A stretch of 64,000 bases of DNA from Phaeosaccion multiseriatum (lineage: Eukaryota; Protista; Ochrophyta, other classes). Below, in pieces: positions 27,199 to 37,300 of this stretch. Each line of letters opens with the position of its first letter. The stretch's first letter is position 1. The stretch is taken from positions 1,240,001-1,304,000 of the forward strand of contig OZ218953.1 in assembly GCA_965112735.1 (NCBI GenBank), read 5' to 3'. Below the pieces are notes generated by a model. It was given only the letters and a program-made list of their open reading frames with translations. It was not told the DNA's origin and searched no databases. A program made the translations under genes and the position numbers.

Positions 27199-29278
27199 AT
27201 GGACGAGGCAGGAGTGAGAGAAGCCCAGGAGAGAGGGGCGCCAGCAGTAAAAGTGAAAGTGGGAAGAAGGGGAAGTGGAGAGGGGCGGGGAGGAGGAGTA
27301 CGGGAAGGACAGGGAGGAGAAAGAGGGTGCGATGGGAGCAGGGGCCGAAGGGGGGGAGGAGGGGGCAGAGGAGGTGGGGGTGGAGGGGGGTGGATAGGAG
27401 GAGAAGGGGGAGGAGGAGAGGCCTACAAAGCGCCACCACCACCACCACCACAGCAGCACCACCAGCAGCAGCAGCAACAACAACATCAGAGACACATCTT
27501 TTCGTCACCAGCAGTGCCCGCAGACACATTCTGGACGGATGCGAATGCTCGTATTCCGCCCCAACTCATACGCGTGAATGGGGGCGCAGCGGCAGGAGCA
27601 GGAGCACAGGAAGAGCAGCAGCAGCACGAGGGAAAGAATGGGCCTTCGGTGACAGTGATGAGTTTCAATGTCCTGGCCGACGCCTACGCCAAACCCCGCG
27701 CGTTCCCAGGAGTAGATAGGCAGGCGCTGCGTTTTATGCATCGACGCGAGACAATGGCAAAGCGCTTGCGGAGCTGCAGCGAGGCCGGGGTTGACCTGAT
27801 GCTGCTACAAGAGGTGAGTGAGTGAGTGAGTGACTGAGTGAGTGAGTGAGTGAGTGAGTGAGTGAGTGAGTGAGTGAGTGAGTGAGTGAGTGAGTGAGTG
27901 AGTGAGTGAGTGAGTGAGTGAGTGAGTGAGTGAGTGAGTGAGTGAGTGAGTGAGTGAGTGAGTGAGTGAGTGACTGGGTGAGTGAGTGAGTAAGTGAGTG
28001 AGTGAGTAAGTGAGTGAGTGAGTGAGTGCGTGCGTGAGTGCATGCGTGAGTGAGTGAGTGAGTGAGTGAGTGAGTGAGGGCGGGCGTGAGTGCGTGGGGC
28101 GCCTTCTTGGAGCGACCAAAGGGGTTAAGTGAGTGTGGAGAAGGAGTAGCTGAGTGCTGCAGAGCCTCGCCCTGAATGGACGCTTGGGTTATCTTGTGGC
28201 GAGGTGTATTGTCTGTAATTTCTTACTATGTAGCCTGCCACCTACTGAGGTCATCAGGAGGACCCCTAAGAAGCATTCCGTCTTTGCAACAAATGTATAT
28301 ATACATAAATAAACGGGACAGTGGTGAGCGAAAGGAGCGGTATGGGTCTACTCATATCGCCCTGACAATGCCATTGGCCTTGACCCTCCTGCTGCTCTCC
28401 CTCCCTCCCTCCCTCCCTCCCTCCCTCCCTCCTTCTCTCCCTCCCTCCTTCCCCTCCCTCCCTCCCTTCCTCCCGTTAGGTGGATCATTGGGAAGACTTC
28501 TACAAGCAGGTGTTGCTGAGCCTGGGCTACATTGCTATCTTCGAAAAGAGACCAAGCGACGACAAAACCGACGGCGTGTAAGCTGCCTGCCTCTGGCAAC
28601 GACTGTCTTTGCCTCCCTTCCCTCCTTCCTTCCTTACTTCCTTCCTTCCTTCCTCCCTCCCTCCCCAGTTCCCCTCTTCCTTAAACACTGATTGTCCTTA
28701 CTCACCCACTAACTCAATGGCACCTTGCGTGCGCCTCCACAATTCCTTGCCTGTTCGGCTCCTGGCTCCTGGCTCCTTGCTACCGCCGCTACACCGGGCA
28801 CCATCAACCTTCACGCTCCAACTTCCGACAGCGCCATCGCATGGAGGGCGTCCAAGCTGCAGCTCCTCGACTCAGAAACCATCAGGTGAAGTCGAACATC
28901 TCTCCCTTCCTTCGTTCCCGCCTTTCCTTCCTCGCTTCCTTCCTCCCTCCCTTCCTTCCGTCTTGGCTCCTTTCGCCGCTCCCATTCTGTATTTCCGTTT
29001 TAACGCGCTCACACCAATACACCAATACCTGCCCTTCTCTCCTTGGGATGATGGTGCGCAGCTTCGACGACTTCTTCCCCACCCCCTCTCTGGAGCAGTA
29101 CCGCAAGCACAATGTCGCCCTGGCGTGTCTGTTTAAGTTCCTCCCTCCACTCGGTGAGCGTTGGTGGAGCGACGAAACCCCCAAGCCCCCGGCCAGAGGG
29201 GGGGAGGGGAGGACTCTTCTTGTGTGCTGCACTCACCTCTTTTGGAACCCGAAAGGCCTGGGACCCTGTATTAAGAGT

Positions 29279-29330
<52 letters not shown>

Positions 29331-32300
29331 GTGTGTGTTTGTGTGTGGGTGGGTGTATAGTGATCTTTTCAGGGAGGACACGACAAGAAGCGATGTGAGA
29401 GAGATGAAGGGCTGCTTCCTTCTGCTTTGAGGCAGCAATCGTGATGTGGAGTGATGTGGAGTGATACGGAGTGAGCCCAGGCCAACGCTCTATTCGGATC
29501 ACCTCTTCTCAGTGCGGACGGGCACTCCACCACCCCGAGCTCACGCCCGCCCCCTCTCCCCTTCTTCCCCCCTTCCCCTCCCTCCCCCCTCCCTCCCTCC
29601 CTCCCCACCTCCCTCCGGCAGTGCTGCAGGCCGCGCTGCTGCTCGATATGCTGACCAACATCAAGCGCCGAGTCAGGCTCAGTGCGGGCGAGGGTATGGA
29701 TGACGAGGACAAGAAGGACGTGGAAGACGTGGAGGACGAGGAGGACGAGGAGGATCCTAGCAAGGGGTGGGGGGGGGAGGGAGGGGATGAGCCGGCGGTG
29801 CTGCTGGGGGGCGACTTCAACTCAACTCCGGAGTCATGCGTCCTGAAGCTCCTCACACAGGTCTGCTGAGCTGGTTGCGCTTAAATATGGCCCTTGCTTT
29901 GCATACAGTGTAACCGTGTAACCGTGTAACTGTGTAACCGTGTGACTGTGTAACCGTGTCTCTTTCCTATGTCTGTCTGTCTACTCTCATAATACAGTCC
30001 CGTTGTCTACAAATAAGTCTCCTCTTCTCATGTCTGTCTGCCTCTGCTCACTTCTCTGCAGGGGTGGGTTCAGCCCGAGCTTGCCCACGACCCCTCCAAG
30101 TTCTTCTGTACCTCCGAGCTTAACAAACTTTGCAGGTCAGTGAGTCAGTCAGTGAGTCAGTCAGTCAGTGAGTCAGTCAGTCAGTCAGTCAGTCAGTCAG
30201 TCAGTAAGACAGTCAGTCAGTCAGTCGGTCAGTCAGTCAGTCAGTCAGTCAGCGAGTCAGTCAGTCAGTCAATCAGTCAGTCAGTCGGTGTCAGTCTGTC
30301 TGTCTGTCAGTCAGTCAATCCTTCAGTCGGTCAGTCAGTCATTGTCAGTCCAGTCAATCAGTCAGTCAGTCAGGCAGCCAGTGTCAGTCAGTCAGTCAGT
30401 CCGTCAGTCAATCAGTCAGTCAGTTCGCTACTCAGTCAATCAGTCAGTCAGTCGATCAGACAGTCAGTCAGTCAGTCCGTCAGTCTTCAGTCAATCAGTC
30501 AGTCAGTCCGTCAGTCAGTCCGTCAGTCAGTCAGTCAGTTAGTCAGTCAATCAGTCAGTCAGTCCGTCAGTTAGTCAGTCAATCAGTCAGTCACACAGTC
30601 AGTCAGTCGGTCAGCCATTCAGTCGGGCCCAAAGCCACAGCACACACTCTTTTGGGTACTGAGGGGGTCTGATGCGACGATGTGTCTCTCTCGTCTACCT
30701 TATCTCTCTCCTTCCTTTCTCCCTCCCTCCCTCCCTCCCTCCCTTCCTCCCTTCCTCCCTCCCTTCCTCCCTCCCTCCCTCCCTCCCTCCCTCCCTCCCT
30801 CTCTCCCTCCCTCTCTCCCTCCCTCCCTTCTTTCAGGAACATGCGATGTCTGGGCATCGACACCGCTCTGGAGACGCAGGAGGAGGAGCAGCAACGCATC
30901 AAGAAGAGAGACTTCGTTGTGTTCGAGCGCGCCAAGCTCGAGCGGCGTGTGCTTGTCACTGCATCGAAAGGCATCATCAATAAGAAGGTATAGGCATTAC
31001 ACTGCCATCACAAGACCGTTACACCACTACCTTTGTAGGCCATCGTGTACTTGTGCACACACACGCACGCACCCACATTCGACATGCATTTTTGCTCCAT
31101 GTATAGCCCCTTCCGACCTACTCCTCGCTTCATGCATCCTGTCTGTGCGCGTGTATGTGCGTGTGCGTATTCGCGTGCGTGTGCTCGTGTGTGTGTGCGT
31201 GTATCTGCGTATGTGTGTGGTGCGATGTGTCTTTCCACCACGGCTATCTGTTGCGCCAATCAACTCATAAAAAAGGACTGTCCGGAAGGCTTCCACATAA
31301 TGGCCAATGACCAAGACTACTCTCTAGCCTTCCTCTGCAAGCTCTACGGCGTGAAGCTACAGGCGTACCGCTACCTCACTCGGTGCGTCAAGTGTAACGG
31401 TTTCATCACCGCCTGCTGTCGAGAAGAGATGGAAGAGCTGAGGTGAGTGAGAGTGAGCGGAGATGCTTCACTGCCGCAGTGCCTGCTCTGCTGGCTGTCG
31501 AGTCAAGACATGGAATAAACAGAAAGAGAAATGATTTACCACTCTGGCTGTCGGGCGTATGTGTGTCGGTGGATGGGCCTGGGACTTTAAAAAACAAAAT
31601 TATCAGTATCCAGGTGTTCCGTTGTGCAACTGCAATTCGTGAGAGTGAGTGACCACTTTTGTATTACAAACAAACAAAACATTCACTCACGTAAGCTTAT
31701 GGCCTCTCAGGCGGTCAGAGGGGGCTCCTGCCTTTGCTTTGGCTAACGACGAAGTCTATCTTTGCCGGGGATGCGGACAATGCTACTGGTGGAACGTTCG
31801 GGAAGGAAGCTCTGCCTACAGAGCGAAGGAGAATGCGAGGAGGCTTCATGCTCTCATTATGGACGTGGTAGGAGCTCCACCTTCTTCTCCTCCTGTCCCT
31901 CCTCCTCCTTCTGCTGCTGCTGCTGCTGCTGCAGGAGGAGCAGGAGGAGGAGCAAGACGGGGAGGAGCAGGAGGAGGAAGGGGGAACAGAGAGACGGAGA
32001 GGAAGAGCGATGAGGAGGAGACCGGTAGCTGCGAGGTGAGCGCATTACAATTAGAGGAGGAAGGGGGTGACATGATGCCTTCTAAACACACCTGCAGACA
32101 AGATGCAGAGAGCAAGGAAGGAGGAAGCAGCACAGGCCAGAGGGGGCTTGCACGCACGCACACACACACACTGCATTTGGATCGCTACCGGAGGGGAGAG
32201 AGCTTCGAGAACGACCTGGGCCTAAGCAGCGCCTATGCCGCCTACCCGAGGGAGTTGTGGTTCACGCCAGGTGGCGATGGTGCTGGGGGGCCCGCGGCGG

Positions 32301-33136
32301 TGAAGAGGGGTGGGGGGGAGAGAGATGGCTCCGATCGGGACGCAGCAGCAGTTCGTGGTACAGAAGGAGGAGAAGGAGGAGGAGGAGGAGGAGGAGGAGG
32401 AGAAGCAGCAGCAGGAGTAGCAGCACCGCCGCTGCCAGTAGCTGGTGATAGAGGAAGAAAAGCAGCAGCAGTTGGTGATGCAGGAGCAGCAGCAGCAGCA
32501 GCATTAGCACCACCATCGCCGCCAGCACTTGGAGATACAGGAGCAGCAGCAGGAGCAGCAGCGGCAATAGCACAACCACTATCGCCGCCATCGCATGGGC
32601 TCGGGCCTCCCAGAGATGCCCCCTACACCAATGCTCCGGCAGGGTTCTGTGGGACTTTGGATTACATCTTTTACGATCACAGTTGGCGGGTGGAGGCCCT
32701 GCTGCCCGTGCCGAAGCTGAGCTGTTTTGGTCCCGAGCGATTGCCGAATGCTTCCTGGCCCAGTGATCACCTTTGTCTCATCGCGCAGTTGCGCCTCTGT
32801 GGCGCTGGAGGAGGAGGAGGAGGAGAAGAAGGAGGAGGAGGAGGAGGAGGAGGAGGAGGAGGAGGAGGAGGAGGAGGAGGAAGAGGAGGAGGAGGAGGAG
32901 GAGGAGGAGGAAGAGGAGGAGGAGGAGGAGGAGGAGGAGGGGGGGGGGGGGGGGGAGGAGGAGGAGGAGGAGAAGGAGGAGGAGAAGGAGGAGGAGGAGG
33001 AGAAGGAGGAGCAGGGGGAGGAGGGGGAGGAGGGGAAGAGGTAGGAGGAGGAGGAGGAGGAGGAGGAGGAGGAGGAGGAGGAGGAGGAGGAGGAGGAGGA
33101 GGAGGAGCAGCAGCAGGAGGAGGACGAGGGGGGTGA
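27199..33136 (+). CDS. CCR4/nocturnin/angel-type EEP nuclease-phosphatase with inserted Mut7-C (PIN-like + Zn ribbon) domain; exons 27199-27813, 28480-28577, 28832-28885, 29062-29276, 29622-29860, 30062-30135, 30837-30987, 31276-31442, 31711-33136
   Basis: EEP motifs: VMSFNVLADAY, LLQEVD, DGVAIAW, THLFWNP, GGDFNSTP, YTN..FCGTLDYIFY, LPNASWPSDH. Mut7-C motifs: KFFC..LNKLCRNMRCLGIDT, AKLERRVLVT, TRCVKCNG, YLCRGCGQCYWW. Intron phases are consistent. The Gly-rich tail is uncertain. Confidence 0.88.
27814..28077 (+). repeat. (GTGA)n array starting at the splice donor
   Basis: gag|gtgagtgagtgagt... Confidence 0.95.
30136..30612 (+). repeat. Degenerate (GTCA)n array starting at the splice donor
   Basis: ag|gtcagtgagtcagtcag... 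Confidence 0.93.
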
Positions 33137-33263: not shown

Positions 33264-34333
33264 TCACTCTGCGAAGAAGAGGGCCATTCGCTGCAGGCAG
33301 TCGTCGCGGTGTGTGTGCTGCAGCTCCTCCATAAAGGGCAGCGCACTTGCCACGACAAAGGCCGAACGGCCACCACCACCACCAGTTGGTGATTCAGCAG
33401 CAGTAACACCAAAAGAAGTTGGTGATACAGCAGCGGCAGTGACATGGTCCAGATGGCGCAGCAGCGCCACAGCGAGATAGACGAGGTAGTCAGGGCCCTT
33501 GGTAGCAGTGAGGAGCGCGGCAGCGACTCTTTGGCGGTGGCTCAGAGGCACCGATAGAGACGCCAGCGCAACGGGTATGGGTGACGCACATGTCAGATCT
33601 TCAGATGGCGACGACAGTGACCGAAGCAAGATAGAGCCTACCCCGCCGCCCCCCCAGAAGGAGTGTATGAGCATCGAGTGTGCTGCGGTTGCCACAGAGA
33701 CGCCCTTGCACGCCAGCCGAGGCCCCACATGGGGCAGTGCCGTCGCAGTTACCTCCACCGCGAGCTGGCTCAGCAGGAGCAAGGGCGAGTCTCCAAAGGC
33801 CCTCCGACTGCAAAAGAAGGCACCGGATGGCGGAGGCGTTTTTCTCGCGGGGAGGTGAGGTCCTGCCGCTGCCCTTGGTCCTGTCGCTGCTGTATCACCC
33901 ACTGCTGCTGCTGGTGCTGCTGTTACTGTTGCTGATGTTGCTGCTGCTGTATCACCAACTCCTCCTCCTCCAGCTGGCCACAGACACTCACCCCACCACA
34001 GCTCTCCTACAGCCCGCAGCACTCGTCTCGTTAGCGCCGCATCACAGCCACTGGAAAGGTACATGGTGGCTGCGAACCAATCGCAATTCGGTGATAATGA
34101 GGATGATGATGATGATGATAATGATGATGATGATGGTGGTGGTGGTAAAGGTGATAATATACAAGACCCACCACCACCATCATCGGCATTTCTGCTGCTA
34201 CCACCAATACCACCACCACCACCACCACCACCGCCACCACCACCACCATGAGCAGGAGCAGAAGCAAGAGGAGGAGAAGCCCTGCTGCCCCACATGAGGG
34301 GCAGGAGGTCCCTCTCCAAGCCTGAGGGCAAGC

Positions 34334-34384
<51 letters not shown>

Positions 34385-37300
34385 TAGCACCATCGCTGCT
34401 CATGCTACTACTTGTACTGCTGCTTCTGCTGCTGCTGCTGCTGTTTCCCCCTCCCGCCATGGCATCCAGCCTGTTGCCAAACACGCCTCTCGCTACCTCG
34501 CCCACCACGCGCACAGCCTCCGTGACAACCCCAGCTCGGAGACCATCAAAGTCGCGCACCCCCAGGGGGTCGTTGTTGTCCGCGTTGGTCGCCCGCTGAG
34601 AAGGAATTGCGGGATACGGTTGTTGCCCACGCACGCGCCCACACTCGCTCCCGTCAACGTTCAGGACATCGTTAACATCCCCCTTGGGTCCTCCCAGCAG
34701 CTCGATGAGAAGAAGGGGCATGCCTTCACTCTGCAAGCACTTGCCCGAGGACAGCAGGACAGGCAGCGCGGCCTCTACTTGCGAGCGCCACTGTTGCCAC
34801 TGTATCACCAACTGCTGCTGCTGTACATTTCCCTCCCAGGTAGCCCCTGCTGCCCTGTCCAGTGCTTCGCCTTGCCGTCGCTCCCGTGGTGGATAGCTGC
34901 CCGCCACAGCTGCTGCCACCCCCGCCCCCACTGACGCAGCAGTAGGAGCGGCCCTCAGAAGCGCAGACATTACCCGCACTGCCGACGACACTGACGACAC
35001 TGGTGCTACGGTACCACCAGCTGCTGCGCCTGACGCGCACTCCTCCTCCTCCTCCTCCTCCTCCTCCTTCTCCACTGCATGAAAGCAATCCATCTCATGG
35101 AGCAATCTCTCGCAGCTCACAGACCAGGCATCAGTAGGCGCACAGCTCCCCTCTTCCCCTTCCTCCTCCGAAGCATCCATAAGGGCGCCACCGCTTGTTG
35201 GCCCCCCGTCCCCTTCTTCCTCCTCCAGACCAGACACAACAGTATTTACGGCAGCGCCAGCTTGCTGCTGCCTCTGCTGCTGCTGTATGACCAACTGCTT
35301 CTCCTGCTGCTGTCTCTGCCTCCTCCTCCGCTGGGGGCGCCTCCTGTCCCTCCACTCCTGCCCTCCCCCCCCCAAGACAGCCCTCAAAAGGATCGCTCGG
35401 AGCGCCAGGATTCCCTCCACGCTCGAAGTGCCCACGGACCGCAAAAGCAACAAGCCGTACAGCCTCGTGTCAGGATCATGATGCCCCTCCTCTTCCCGCC
35501 TCGGTTGCCCCGCCGCCTCCCCCCTCGGGTCACCCCCTGGGTTTGCCATGGCAATTGCATTTGGTGCCATCCTATGGGGTGTCAGGACGAGGACGCCAAA
35601 GTGTGCTACGATGGCACGCATGAGCTGCAGCGTCCACGCCGTCGGACAGGAGACAGTTACAGTCTCCAGGCTCTTGGCCATGTGGAAGCACGCCCCCTCC
35701 GGCGTCGCCAATGCCAGGGCGAGGCAGTCTTCTCGCAGAGGCAAAGCGACAATGGCTGTCCAGAGCTCGTCGAGAAAACCCTTAGGGTGGAGGGGGGGGA
35801 GGGGGTGGAGGCGAAGTCGGTTGATAGAGTGGGATGGTGGTGGATGGCAGTACATGGCGGTGGGGTAGGGGGGGGTGGGTGGGGCACATGAGCGAGGCCG
35901 CAGGGACGGCATGAGGCCGTGGGGGGAGAAGAGGGGAGGGAGGGGCAGAGAGGACGGGCAGGGTGAGTGACAAGGGACACTGCGCCACTGCGCGACGGAC
36001 GGAATGAGTGTCTGTCTGCTTCTGTCTGCTGGCTTCCGTAAGGGGGGGGGGGGGAGGGGAGGGGAGAAAGTACAGCGTAAGAAAACGTTCGAAAGGGAGG
36101 GCCAAGCTTAGTTCGGAATGTGGGACTATCGACCAACCGACCAACCACTCTCAACGTACCGATTCAGTCAGTGCCCGCTGGCCCACAGGCAAGAGCGCGG
36201 CTTGGCCGACCTCCACGGCGACGTGAACATCCCGGGGGGGGTGCGGGTCCGGCTCCTGCCCCTGCCCCTGCCCCTGCTCCTGCTCCTCCTCCTCCTCCTC
36301 CCCCTGCTGCTGCTGCTGCTGCTCTTTCTCCTGCTCCTCCTGCTCTTGATCCACTCGAATGCCGCCGAGGAAAGGCCTCACTAGCGTCTCCTGCACGGCA
36401 ACTTCGAGCACCGGACTCCGAGTCGGGTCTAATTCTTCCACTCCCCCCGCCCGCCCTCGCCCCCCTGTCTCTTCCTCTCCCTCTCCCCCCCTTGTGGTCG
36501 TTGTCCTCTTCTTCTTCTCTCCTCTCTTTGATACAGACGAAGTTCGAAGCAGGTCACGGTGTCCCGTGCCTCCTCCTCCCTCCTCCCCCTCCCTCCCCTC
36601 ATCTCCCTCCTCCTCCTCCTCCTCCTCCTCCTCCTCCGCTCGTCGAAGCCACATGAGGCCCTCTAGAGAGCCTGCCCACTGACTCAGACAGAACTTCACC
36701 TTGCCCCTGGCCTTTGCGCATACTCTCCTCCTTCTCTCCTTCAAGAGCCTTGCGTCGCTGTCACAACTGGCCTGCCGCATGTTACCTCCCTCCTCCGTCG
36801 TCGCCTCCGTCTTCCCCTCGCCGCTGTGATCATCTCTATCATCGCCGTGGTCAGTGCCTTCTGAGTCTAGGGCCATCTCACATACCTCCTCTCCTCCTTC
36901 TTCCTCTTCCCCCTCCTCTCGCCCCAGCTGTCGCAGCCCCCGTCGCAGCAATGCAGCCAGTGCCTGAGGCAAGCCGTAGTAGTGGAGCACAGCGCACGCT
37001 CCGGTCACACGTGCGAGGGGGGCCAACGCACATGCAAAGCGCAGGCCCAGCTCGCCGAGGCGCTCCTGCTGCTGTATCACCAACTGATGTATCACCGACT
37101 GCTGCTGCTGCTGCTCTCCACTACCATCTTGAGCCCTGTCACCTTCTCCCGGGTGCATCCCTTCTTGTTTCTCCTCCTCCTCCTCCTCCTCCTCCTCCTC
37201 CACCACCACCACCACCACCCACTGCTCCAGTAAGGCCACGGTCAAGCGCAAGAGTACGGCACACGCCTCAGAGGCCATCGTCGGATGCCCACTCTGATGG

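Follow-up and report, generated by a model that had tools for sequence, protein, structure and literature searches.

A nine-exon gene of the ochrophyte alga Phaeosaccion multiseriatum encodes, as judged from its sequence, a nuclease of the CCR4/PDE12/Angel/nocturnin group of EEP enzymes that is interrupted by a complete Mut7-C domain. The gene lies on the + strand at about 27199-33136 of the window, i.e. of the whole stretch of 64,000 nucleotides analysed here (GenBank assembly GCA_965112735.1, contig OZ218953.1, positions 1,240,001 to 1,304,000), to which all coordinates below refer. The Mut7-C domain, made of a PIN-like part and a CxxC..CxxC zinc ribbon, is placed between the GGDFN motif of the EEP domain and its C-terminal motifs LSSAY, GTLDYIF and PSDH. 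This nesting within one protein had been proposed in a first-pass annotation of the same DNA and was recovered by searches of the single exons with Pfam profiles, in the order EEP, Mut7-C, EEP. Our preferred reading, to which we give a probability of roughly 0.6, is that the protein is a magnesium-dependent EEP phosphodiesterase, most likely a 3′-end exoribonuclease, in which the nested Mut7-C serves as a non-catalytic RNA-binding arm.

The nested domain and its gene

The Pfam Mut7-C profile (PF01927) matches three successive exons in a colinear manner: exon 7 over profile positions 16-55 (E 1.4e-3, 19.2 bits), exon 8 over positions 63-109 (E 2.5e-3, 18.3 bits) and the start of exon 9 over positions 118-134 (E 0.068, 13.7 bits). 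Each of these matches is under the gathering score of 23.3 bits; in full-length homologues the domain reaches 66-76 bits and runs from profile position 1/2 to 134/135. The Exo_endo_phos profile (PF03372) flanks the insert, with exon 5 matching profile positions 138-160 and exon 9 positions 173-225 (E 4.8e-5). A Pfam scan of the exon 1 extension found no leucine-rich repeat (LRR) and no other domain, and the DEDD domain PF01612 had no Pfam match in any exon or in 38 homologues. The nested Mut7-C comprises about 180 residues, to which a disordered linker is added. When exon peptides were searched one at a time against a family profile built from 68 homologues, the bit score per residue of the insert exons was close to or above that of the EEP exons, so the module is still under constraint.

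All EEP catalytic residues (Asn of the N-terminal strand, Glu of LQE, the conserved Asp of exon 2, His of HLxWNP, Asp and Asn of GDFN, Asp of LDYIF, and Asp and His of SDH), which the first-pass annotation had taken to be intact, were located in the window and are essentially invariant in the 68 homologues. The zinc-ribbon cysteines are also intact (CVKC at 31384-31395 and CRGC at 31763-31774), in columns that are Cys in 65-66 of 68 homologues. The situation is different for the Mut7-C acidic residues, which had been described as lost, leaving the module catalytically dead. At the first acidic position this is the case: FFCTSE carries a Thr (30110-30112) where 61/61 homologues have Asp. Of the PIN-type site residues, only this first acidic residue after strand 1 is kept across the Mut7-C family (PMC5499597). 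The second loss, read from VLVTAS, is not specific to the gene, as the canonical TRD position is TTS family-wide (Thr 65/65, Ser 62/65), the window protein having TAS. The description as catalytically dead is therefore clear for the window protein, with its Asp to Thr change, and does not extend to the family, which keeps the first Asp throughout. In addition, the Trp of CRWLR, found in 57/61 homologues, is Asn in the window protein.

The gene model is given in Table 1. By sequence inspection, every border is GT-AG, the frame is unbroken and there are zero stops; the motif positions and the junctions 29860/30062 and 31442/31711 fall where the first-pass annotation had placed them. The putative 5′ end, 27199, is the first in-frame ATG past a stop. 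Exons 1-5 hold the first two thirds of the EEP domain, and the insert follows from 30062 to about 31870, in exons 6-8 and the first part of exon 9, reading KFFCTSELNKLCR-NMRCLGIDTALET ... RRVLVTASKGIINKK-DCPEG ... RCVKCNG ... LCRGCGQCYWWNVREGSSAYRAKENARRLHALI. The exon peptides are strictly colinear on the family profile, with ends abutting at 58/59, 254/257 and 306/308, and ten full-length homologues match the exons in order by tblastn, covering exon 1 at 27631-27822 and exon 7 with E values down to 3e-10. Because exon 9 carries both the Mut7-C end and the EEP C-terminus in one open reading frame (ORF), two separate genes are excluded; such a reading would leave Mut7-C and EEP both incomplete.

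Table 1. Exons of the nested EEP nuclease gene, elements of exon 9, and match of each exon peptide to the family profile
Feature	Positions	Strand	Encoded elements	Family profile positions (score)
Exon 1	27199..27813	+	Low-complexity N-terminal extension, then EEP start (SVTVMSFNVLADAYA ... LLQE; SFNVLADAYA); catalytic Asn 27667-27669, Glu 27811-27813	6-58 (32.1 bits)
Exon 2	28480..28577	+	VDHWEDFYKQVLLSLGYIAIFEKRPSDDKTDG (VDHWEDFY ... KTDG); conserved Asp 28570-28572; AG/GT borders; tblastn matches	59-88 (15.2 bits), adjoining the exon 1 match
Exon 3	28832..28885	+	AIAWRASKLQLLDSETI / AIAWRASKLQLL; EEP beta strand	90-106 (0.4 bits, weak, yet colinear and with the frame kept)
Exon 4	29062..29276	+	NVALACLFK..LLVCCTHLFWNP; catalytic His 29234-29236; donor GTAAGT	123-157 (24.2 bits)
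Exon 5	29622..29860	+	Acidic loop, then VLLGGDFNSTPESCVLKLLTQ; Asp 29813-29815, Asn 29819-29821; closed at 29860 by GGDFNSTP..LLTQ, the final EEP element ahead of the insert	182-207 (19.0 bits)
Exon 6	30062..30135	+	Insert start, first Mut7-C strand and helix: GWVQPELAHDPSKFFCTSELNKLC / KFFCTSELNKLC	239-254
Exon 7	30837..30987	+	Mut7-C PIN-like core: MRCLGIDTALET..RRVLVTASKGIINKK; also given as MRCLGIDTALET ... ERRVLVTASKGIINKK	257-306 (49.8 bits)
Exon 8	31276..31442	+	Middle of Mut7-C; first zinc-ribbon CxxC (RCVKCNG), Cys codons 31384-31386 and 31393-31395	308-362 (38.0 bits)
Exon 9	31711..33136	+	Single open frame; Mut7-C end and EEP C-terminus; stop codon 33134-33136	98.6 bits; 373-424 (47.0 bits) and 485-553 (49.6 bits) within one ORF
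Exon 9, second CxxC			LCRGCGQCYWW, Cys 31763-31765 and 31772-31774, then closing Mut7-C helix to about 31870	
Exon 9, order after Mut7-C			Low-complexity linker, LSSAY 32222-32236, second Ala/Gly-rich stretch	
Exon 9, EEP end			PYTN..GTLDYIF (PYTNAPAGFCGTLDYIF; Asp 32660-32662), WPSDH (Asp-His of SDH 32765-32770), Gly/Glu-rich tail	

An intron within the Ala/Gly-rich stretch of exon 9 was considered and rejected: the GT..AG pair 32271..32613, the sole pair inspected (by hand), breaks the frame. An AATAAA is found at about 33144, directly past the stop codon, and an 882-aa, low-complexity-rich ORF on the - strand (33264-35912) converges on the 3′ end of the gene. The introns are mostly microsatellite (27814-28075, 29280-29345, 30136-30600, 30715-30830). 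Runs of (GTGA)n and (GTCA)n begin exactly at donors, so that the donor GTGAGT or GTCAGT is the repeat unit itself, available in many tandem copies, and (CCCT)n runs are located ahead of acceptors.

Homologues and structure models

An exhaustive HMMER search with exon 9 recovered 121 proteins, many of which match in two stretches, the Mut7-C end and the EEP end. A feature search of the ESM Atlas with exon 9 alone was uninformative, with a best score of 0.76. A word-index homology search with residues 1-60 and 296-362 of exon 9 gave no match, probably due to its length window and its requirement for a shared 5-mer. Pfam detected Mut7-C in 38/38 long homologues and Exo_endo_phos in 32/38. The order N-terminal EEP part, Mut7-C, C-terminal EEP part was observed in at least 62 of the fetched proteins and a non-colinear order in none; 15 others are EEP relatives without insert. 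Named sources of nested homologues are Thalassiosira, Cyclotella/Stephanocyclus, Attheya and Mallomonas, so that the similar fusions foreseen for other stramenopiles do occur, in diatoms and in Mallomonas. In two cases, P0005 (917 aa) and P0048 (760 aa), the nested order is carried by intron-free, uninterrupted contig ORFs; the nesting therefore does not stem from the splicing applied in this analysis. The module had been thought to be an acquisition of this gene; with so many nested homologues it is instead long established in the family.

In the ESM Atlas, the two domains occur together in one cluster (120 members, mostly Bacillariophyta), and the label assigned automatically at JGI is ‘mRNA deadenylase ... 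Ccr4 / uncharacterized protein with PIN domain’. A literature search found no paper on this family, none mentioning an EEP-Mut7-C fusion and none pairing ‘Mut7-C’ with ‘CCR4’. Plant CCR4a/b are not counted as a precedent, since the additional domain at their N-terminus is a MYND-like zinc finger. The nested architecture is thus already present in public databases under automatic names, and the gene is a divergent member of a catalogued, unstudied family; as an enzyme type, it would represent a variant of CCR4-type nucleases not previously described in the literature that we found.

In a quick FastTree of the EEP columns, 11 of the 15 insert-less relatives fall in a separate clade and 4 amid insert-bearing proteins (P0154, P0072, P0074 and P0081, one of them from the ciliate Stylonychia lemnae). 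The placement of these four may reflect loss of the insert, or merely poor resolution. Many diatom members (e.g. P0001) end, after the EEP domain, in CxCGCVPxxxSLFEMAELRK, for which there is no Pfam match. A downstream exon encoding the CxCGCVP motif was sought in the window and not found; the window protein ends in a Gly/Glu-rich tail.

Folds were modelled for the Mallomonas homologue P0008, using the 68-sequence alignment, and for a homologue insert alone, rather than for the window protein. P0008 starts directly with the EEP domain, with no LRR ahead. Its AlphaFold model has a mean confidence (pLDDT) of 81.4 and a predicted template-modelling score (pTM) of 0.75, and residues 398-500 are disordered. 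VIA-align recognized a complete EEP fold spanning model residues 1..602: CNOT6L gave Z 35.6 with 288-292 residues aligned, nocturnin Z 35.2 (root-mean-square deviation, rmsd, 1.7), PDE12 Z 34.8 and ANGEL2 Z 33.0. Since about 290 aligned residues are spread across 602, the middle is an insertion in the EEP fold. The insertion topology suggested for the window protein is therefore seen in this homologue, as a CNOT6L-like EEP domain around a confident Mut7-C.

The homologue insert folded alone reached pLDDT 94.2. ESM Atlas rows for the insert were PF01927 in 9/9 cases, with template-modelling (TM) scores of 0.67-0.89. Against solved structures, Foldseek returned as sole significant match the C. 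elegans MUT-7 C-terminal domain (8q66, E 9.4e-4). The same structure is the top VIA-align match (145 residues, about 0.5 Z above generic folds) and, among the VIA-align matches listed, the only one at Z of 6 or more covering both module halves; at the sequence level, a search with the insert profile found 8q66 with E 5.9e-7. As modelled, the homologue insert thus adopts the Mut7-C fold, a reduced PIN-like N-part tied to the C-part by a zinc site. The first-pass annotation had left room for an insert with no Mut7-C profile or structural match; the colinear Pfam matches and the fold of the homologue insert answer this point.

Proposed function and alternative readings

In the mechanism that we favour, the EEP domain would be the only active site. 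The break in it falls in a stretch at the surface that connects the GDFN motif to the LxSAY strand, and a disordered linker leads back to the EEP fold. By analogy with MUT-7 and EXD3, the Mut7-C arm would bind single-stranded RNA and feed or hold the 3′ end at the EEP site. The natural substrate may be a poly(A) or oligo(A) tail, or a 3′ end of a different kind. As the protein is without LRR, its activity probably does not involve the canonical CCR4-CAF1 contact. In the animal enzymes MUT-7 and EXD3, removal of MUT7-C makes RNA binding 6- to 8-fold weaker and slows RNA degradation; the C-terminal domain on its own binds RNA weakly and was a negative control in RNase assays, and RNA binding has been proposed as the ancestral Mut7-C function (Busetto et al. 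2024, PMC11347159).

Several points weigh against this reading. The substrate, the activity and the RNA binding proposed for the family are predictions. The structural match between the homologue insert and 8q66 is modest (Z 8.0, rmsd 4.2). The window protein is without two of the best-conserved Mut7-C residues (Asp to Thr, Trp to Asn), so its insert may work less well than that of its relatives, or differently. Finally, none of the RNA runs surveyed contains more than 9% of the sampled words of the gene. Reads were compared with 30830-32810, a stretch chosen to be free of long (GTCA)n and (GGA)n, with junctions 29860/30062 and 30135/30837 outside it. The RNA-labelled runs X1, X2 and X4 match only microsatellites in this stretch, at 31145-31223 and 32523-32572; these are GT-rich and GCA-repeat stretches, matched with at least 2 mismatches in about 35 bases. 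The splice sites consequently rest on homology and consensus.

Contigs of another run, X13, match 30830-31890, 31988-32358 and 32518-32810 with zero mismatches. They span exons and introns alike, and X13 thus behaves as DNA, possibly that of the source sample. One X13 contig omits 213 bases (71 codons, in frame) at 32325-32539, in the Ala/Gly-rich coding stretch from LSSAY to PYTN. The shorter flank of this gap is just 21 bases of repeat; the gap could reflect an allelic difference in length or an error of assembly.

The insert could mainly bind a protein partner, replacing the LRR toward CAF1/NOT or recruiting the enzyme to a granule. Two observations would fit with this: in Pfam searches, neither an LRR nor any other known domain precedes the window EEP, and the C. 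elegans MUT-7 C-terminal domain binds MUT-8 (PMC11347159). However, MUT-8 is bound through an insertion that is specific to Caenorhabditis and separates the two cysteine pairs, and no MUT-8 binding was seen with EXD3 of human or fish (PMC11347159). Moreover, the family insert is near a minimal Mut7-C unit, with TM about 0.8 between the matched Atlas model and stand-alone prokaryotic Mut7-C models, and the ancestral function proposed for Mut7-C is RNA binding. We consider such a docking role unlikely.

Alternatively, the family could consist of two-nuclease enzymes, in which Mut7-C is an active PIN-type endoribonuclease that cuts RNA before EEP trims it, the window gene being a derived member with its endonuclease site off. 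The family does keep the first PIN-type Asp in every homologue, GxD in 55/62 and the Glu/Asp of ALET in 53/62, and archaeal Mut7-C proteins have been described, on the basis of sequence, as active RNases (PMC4075521, PMC1779556). But the canonical TRD Asp is replaced throughout the family by TTS, the window protein is without the first PIN-type Asp, and RNase assays have employed the C-terminal domains of MUT-7 and EXD3, in isolation, as negative controls (PMC11347159). This arrangement seems to us quite improbable.

The EEP domain might also act on a small phosphoester, with a nocturnin-, ANGEL2- or PDE12-type substrate, instead of being an RNA exonuclease. The structural scores hardly separate CNOT6L, nocturnin, PDE12 and ANGEL2, which differ by no more than about 2.6 Z units, and PDE12 is the top solved-structure match of the window C-terminal exon (exon 9 C-terminus) by single-sequence search (E 6e-6). 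The family profile, in contrast, ranks yeast Ccr4 (E 6.6e-60) and CNOT6L (9e-59) ahead of PDE12 (4e-54), ANGEL2 (1e-51) and nocturnin (9e-44), and for an enzyme with an extra RNA-binding module a polymeric RNA is the more plausible substrate. The window protein also keeps the xFxG Phe before LDYIF, a residue which stacks on adenine in CNOT6L and which nocturnin is not known to have; this would speak against a small substrate. On balance this possibility is very doubtful. That the model is an artefact or a pseudogene, joining exons of two genes or a decaying copy whose nested protein is never made, has a next to negligible probability: RNA support was sought among the RNA runs without success, two very conserved Mut7-C residues are lost and the coding sequence has long low-complexity stretches, but the nine exons keep GT-AG borders and frame with no stop, exon 9 joins both domains in a single ORF, all EEP catalytic residues and the four zinc-ribbon cysteines are intact, and the same nested order exists elsewhere as single ORFs (P0005, P0048).

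Starting from the preferred reading, an EEP exoribonuclease with an RNA-binding arm, a more specific and speculative proposal can be made, to which we give small odds. Ochrophyte algae (diatoms, chrysophytes, Phaeosaccion) might possess a dedicated EEP-Mut7-C RNA 3′-end trimmer, a convergent counterpart of MUT-7/Nibbler acting on small RNAs or special tails rather than on bulk mRNA poly(A). A role with small RNAs, also raised by the first-pass annotation, is at most suggested by the analogy with MUT-7. If the proposal is true, one and the same RNA-binding arm, Mut7-C, would have been recruited by an EEP nuclease in these algae and by a DEDD nuclease in animals.

Two unrelated 3′-end nuclease folds, DEDD (MUT-7/EXD3) and EEP, are each paired with Mut7-C, and this lends support to a recent proposal in which Mut7-C helps exonucleases in general to bind RNA. 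The EEP-Mut7-C family would provide a second, independent system for testing this proposal, and natural comparators exist, since insert-less EEP relatives were recovered by the same search. For diatom biology, it is a conserved, unstudied nuclease bearing an automatic ‘Ccr4’ label; as the family is without the LRR that defines Ccr4, it should be tested before being counted as a CCR4-NOT deadenylase. The nesting of a whole folded domain in the EEP sandwich also indicates that the loop between GDFN and LxSAY tolerates large insertions.

Comparison with known systems

Among the closest known systems are database members of the family. Thalassiosira oceanica EJK44713 / K0QZ45 and Mallomonas annulata EP01041_P005919 have the same nesting as the window protein, with 40-57% identity over conserved blocks. 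Database members keep the first Mut7-C Asp and the CRWLR Trp, and many have CxCGCVP..SLFEMAELRK at the C-terminus, whereas the window protein is without all three.

Among characterised enzymes, Ccr4/CNOT6/CNOT6L are the best profile and structural matches of the family, with an identical catalytic residue set. Ccr4, CNOT6L, PDE12, ANGEL2 and nocturnin are each matched by the family profile in two stretches, split by the insert. Ccr4, CNOT6 and CNOT6L own an N-terminal CAF1-binding LRR, whereas the window protein does not; the defining CAF1 contact is therefore absent and the protein does not qualify as a canonical Ccr4. No characterised Ccr4 carries a nested Mut7-C and disordered linker as the window protein does.

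PDE12, ANGEL2 and nocturnin are alike in fold and active site (Z 33-35 and 26-31% identity over aligned residues, with the P0008 model) and are likewise without LRR, but none has a Mut7-C. PDE12 acts on 2′,5′-oligoadenylate (2-5A) and mitochondrial poly(A), ANGEL2 on 2′,3′-cyclic phosphate and nocturnin on the 2′-phosphate of NADP(H). As these substrates differ from one another, no substrate is assigned to the window protein from them.

According to the first-pass annotation, the usual fusion partners of eukaryotic Mut7-C are DEDD exonucleases; this agrees with the 2017 PIN classification, where eukaryotic Mut7-C is listed solely as fusions to RNase D-type exonucleases (PMC5499597). MUT-7 and EXD3 have in common with the window protein the pairing of a 3′-end nuclease with Mut7-C. 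MUT-7 has an animal-specific insertion between the cysteine pairs, which the family insert is without, and Drosophila Nibbler has no MUT7-C domain. In MUT-7 and EXD3 the catalytic domain is DEDD and Mut7-C is appended C-terminally, whereas in the window protein the catalytic domain is EEP and Mut7-C is nested within the catalytic fold itself.

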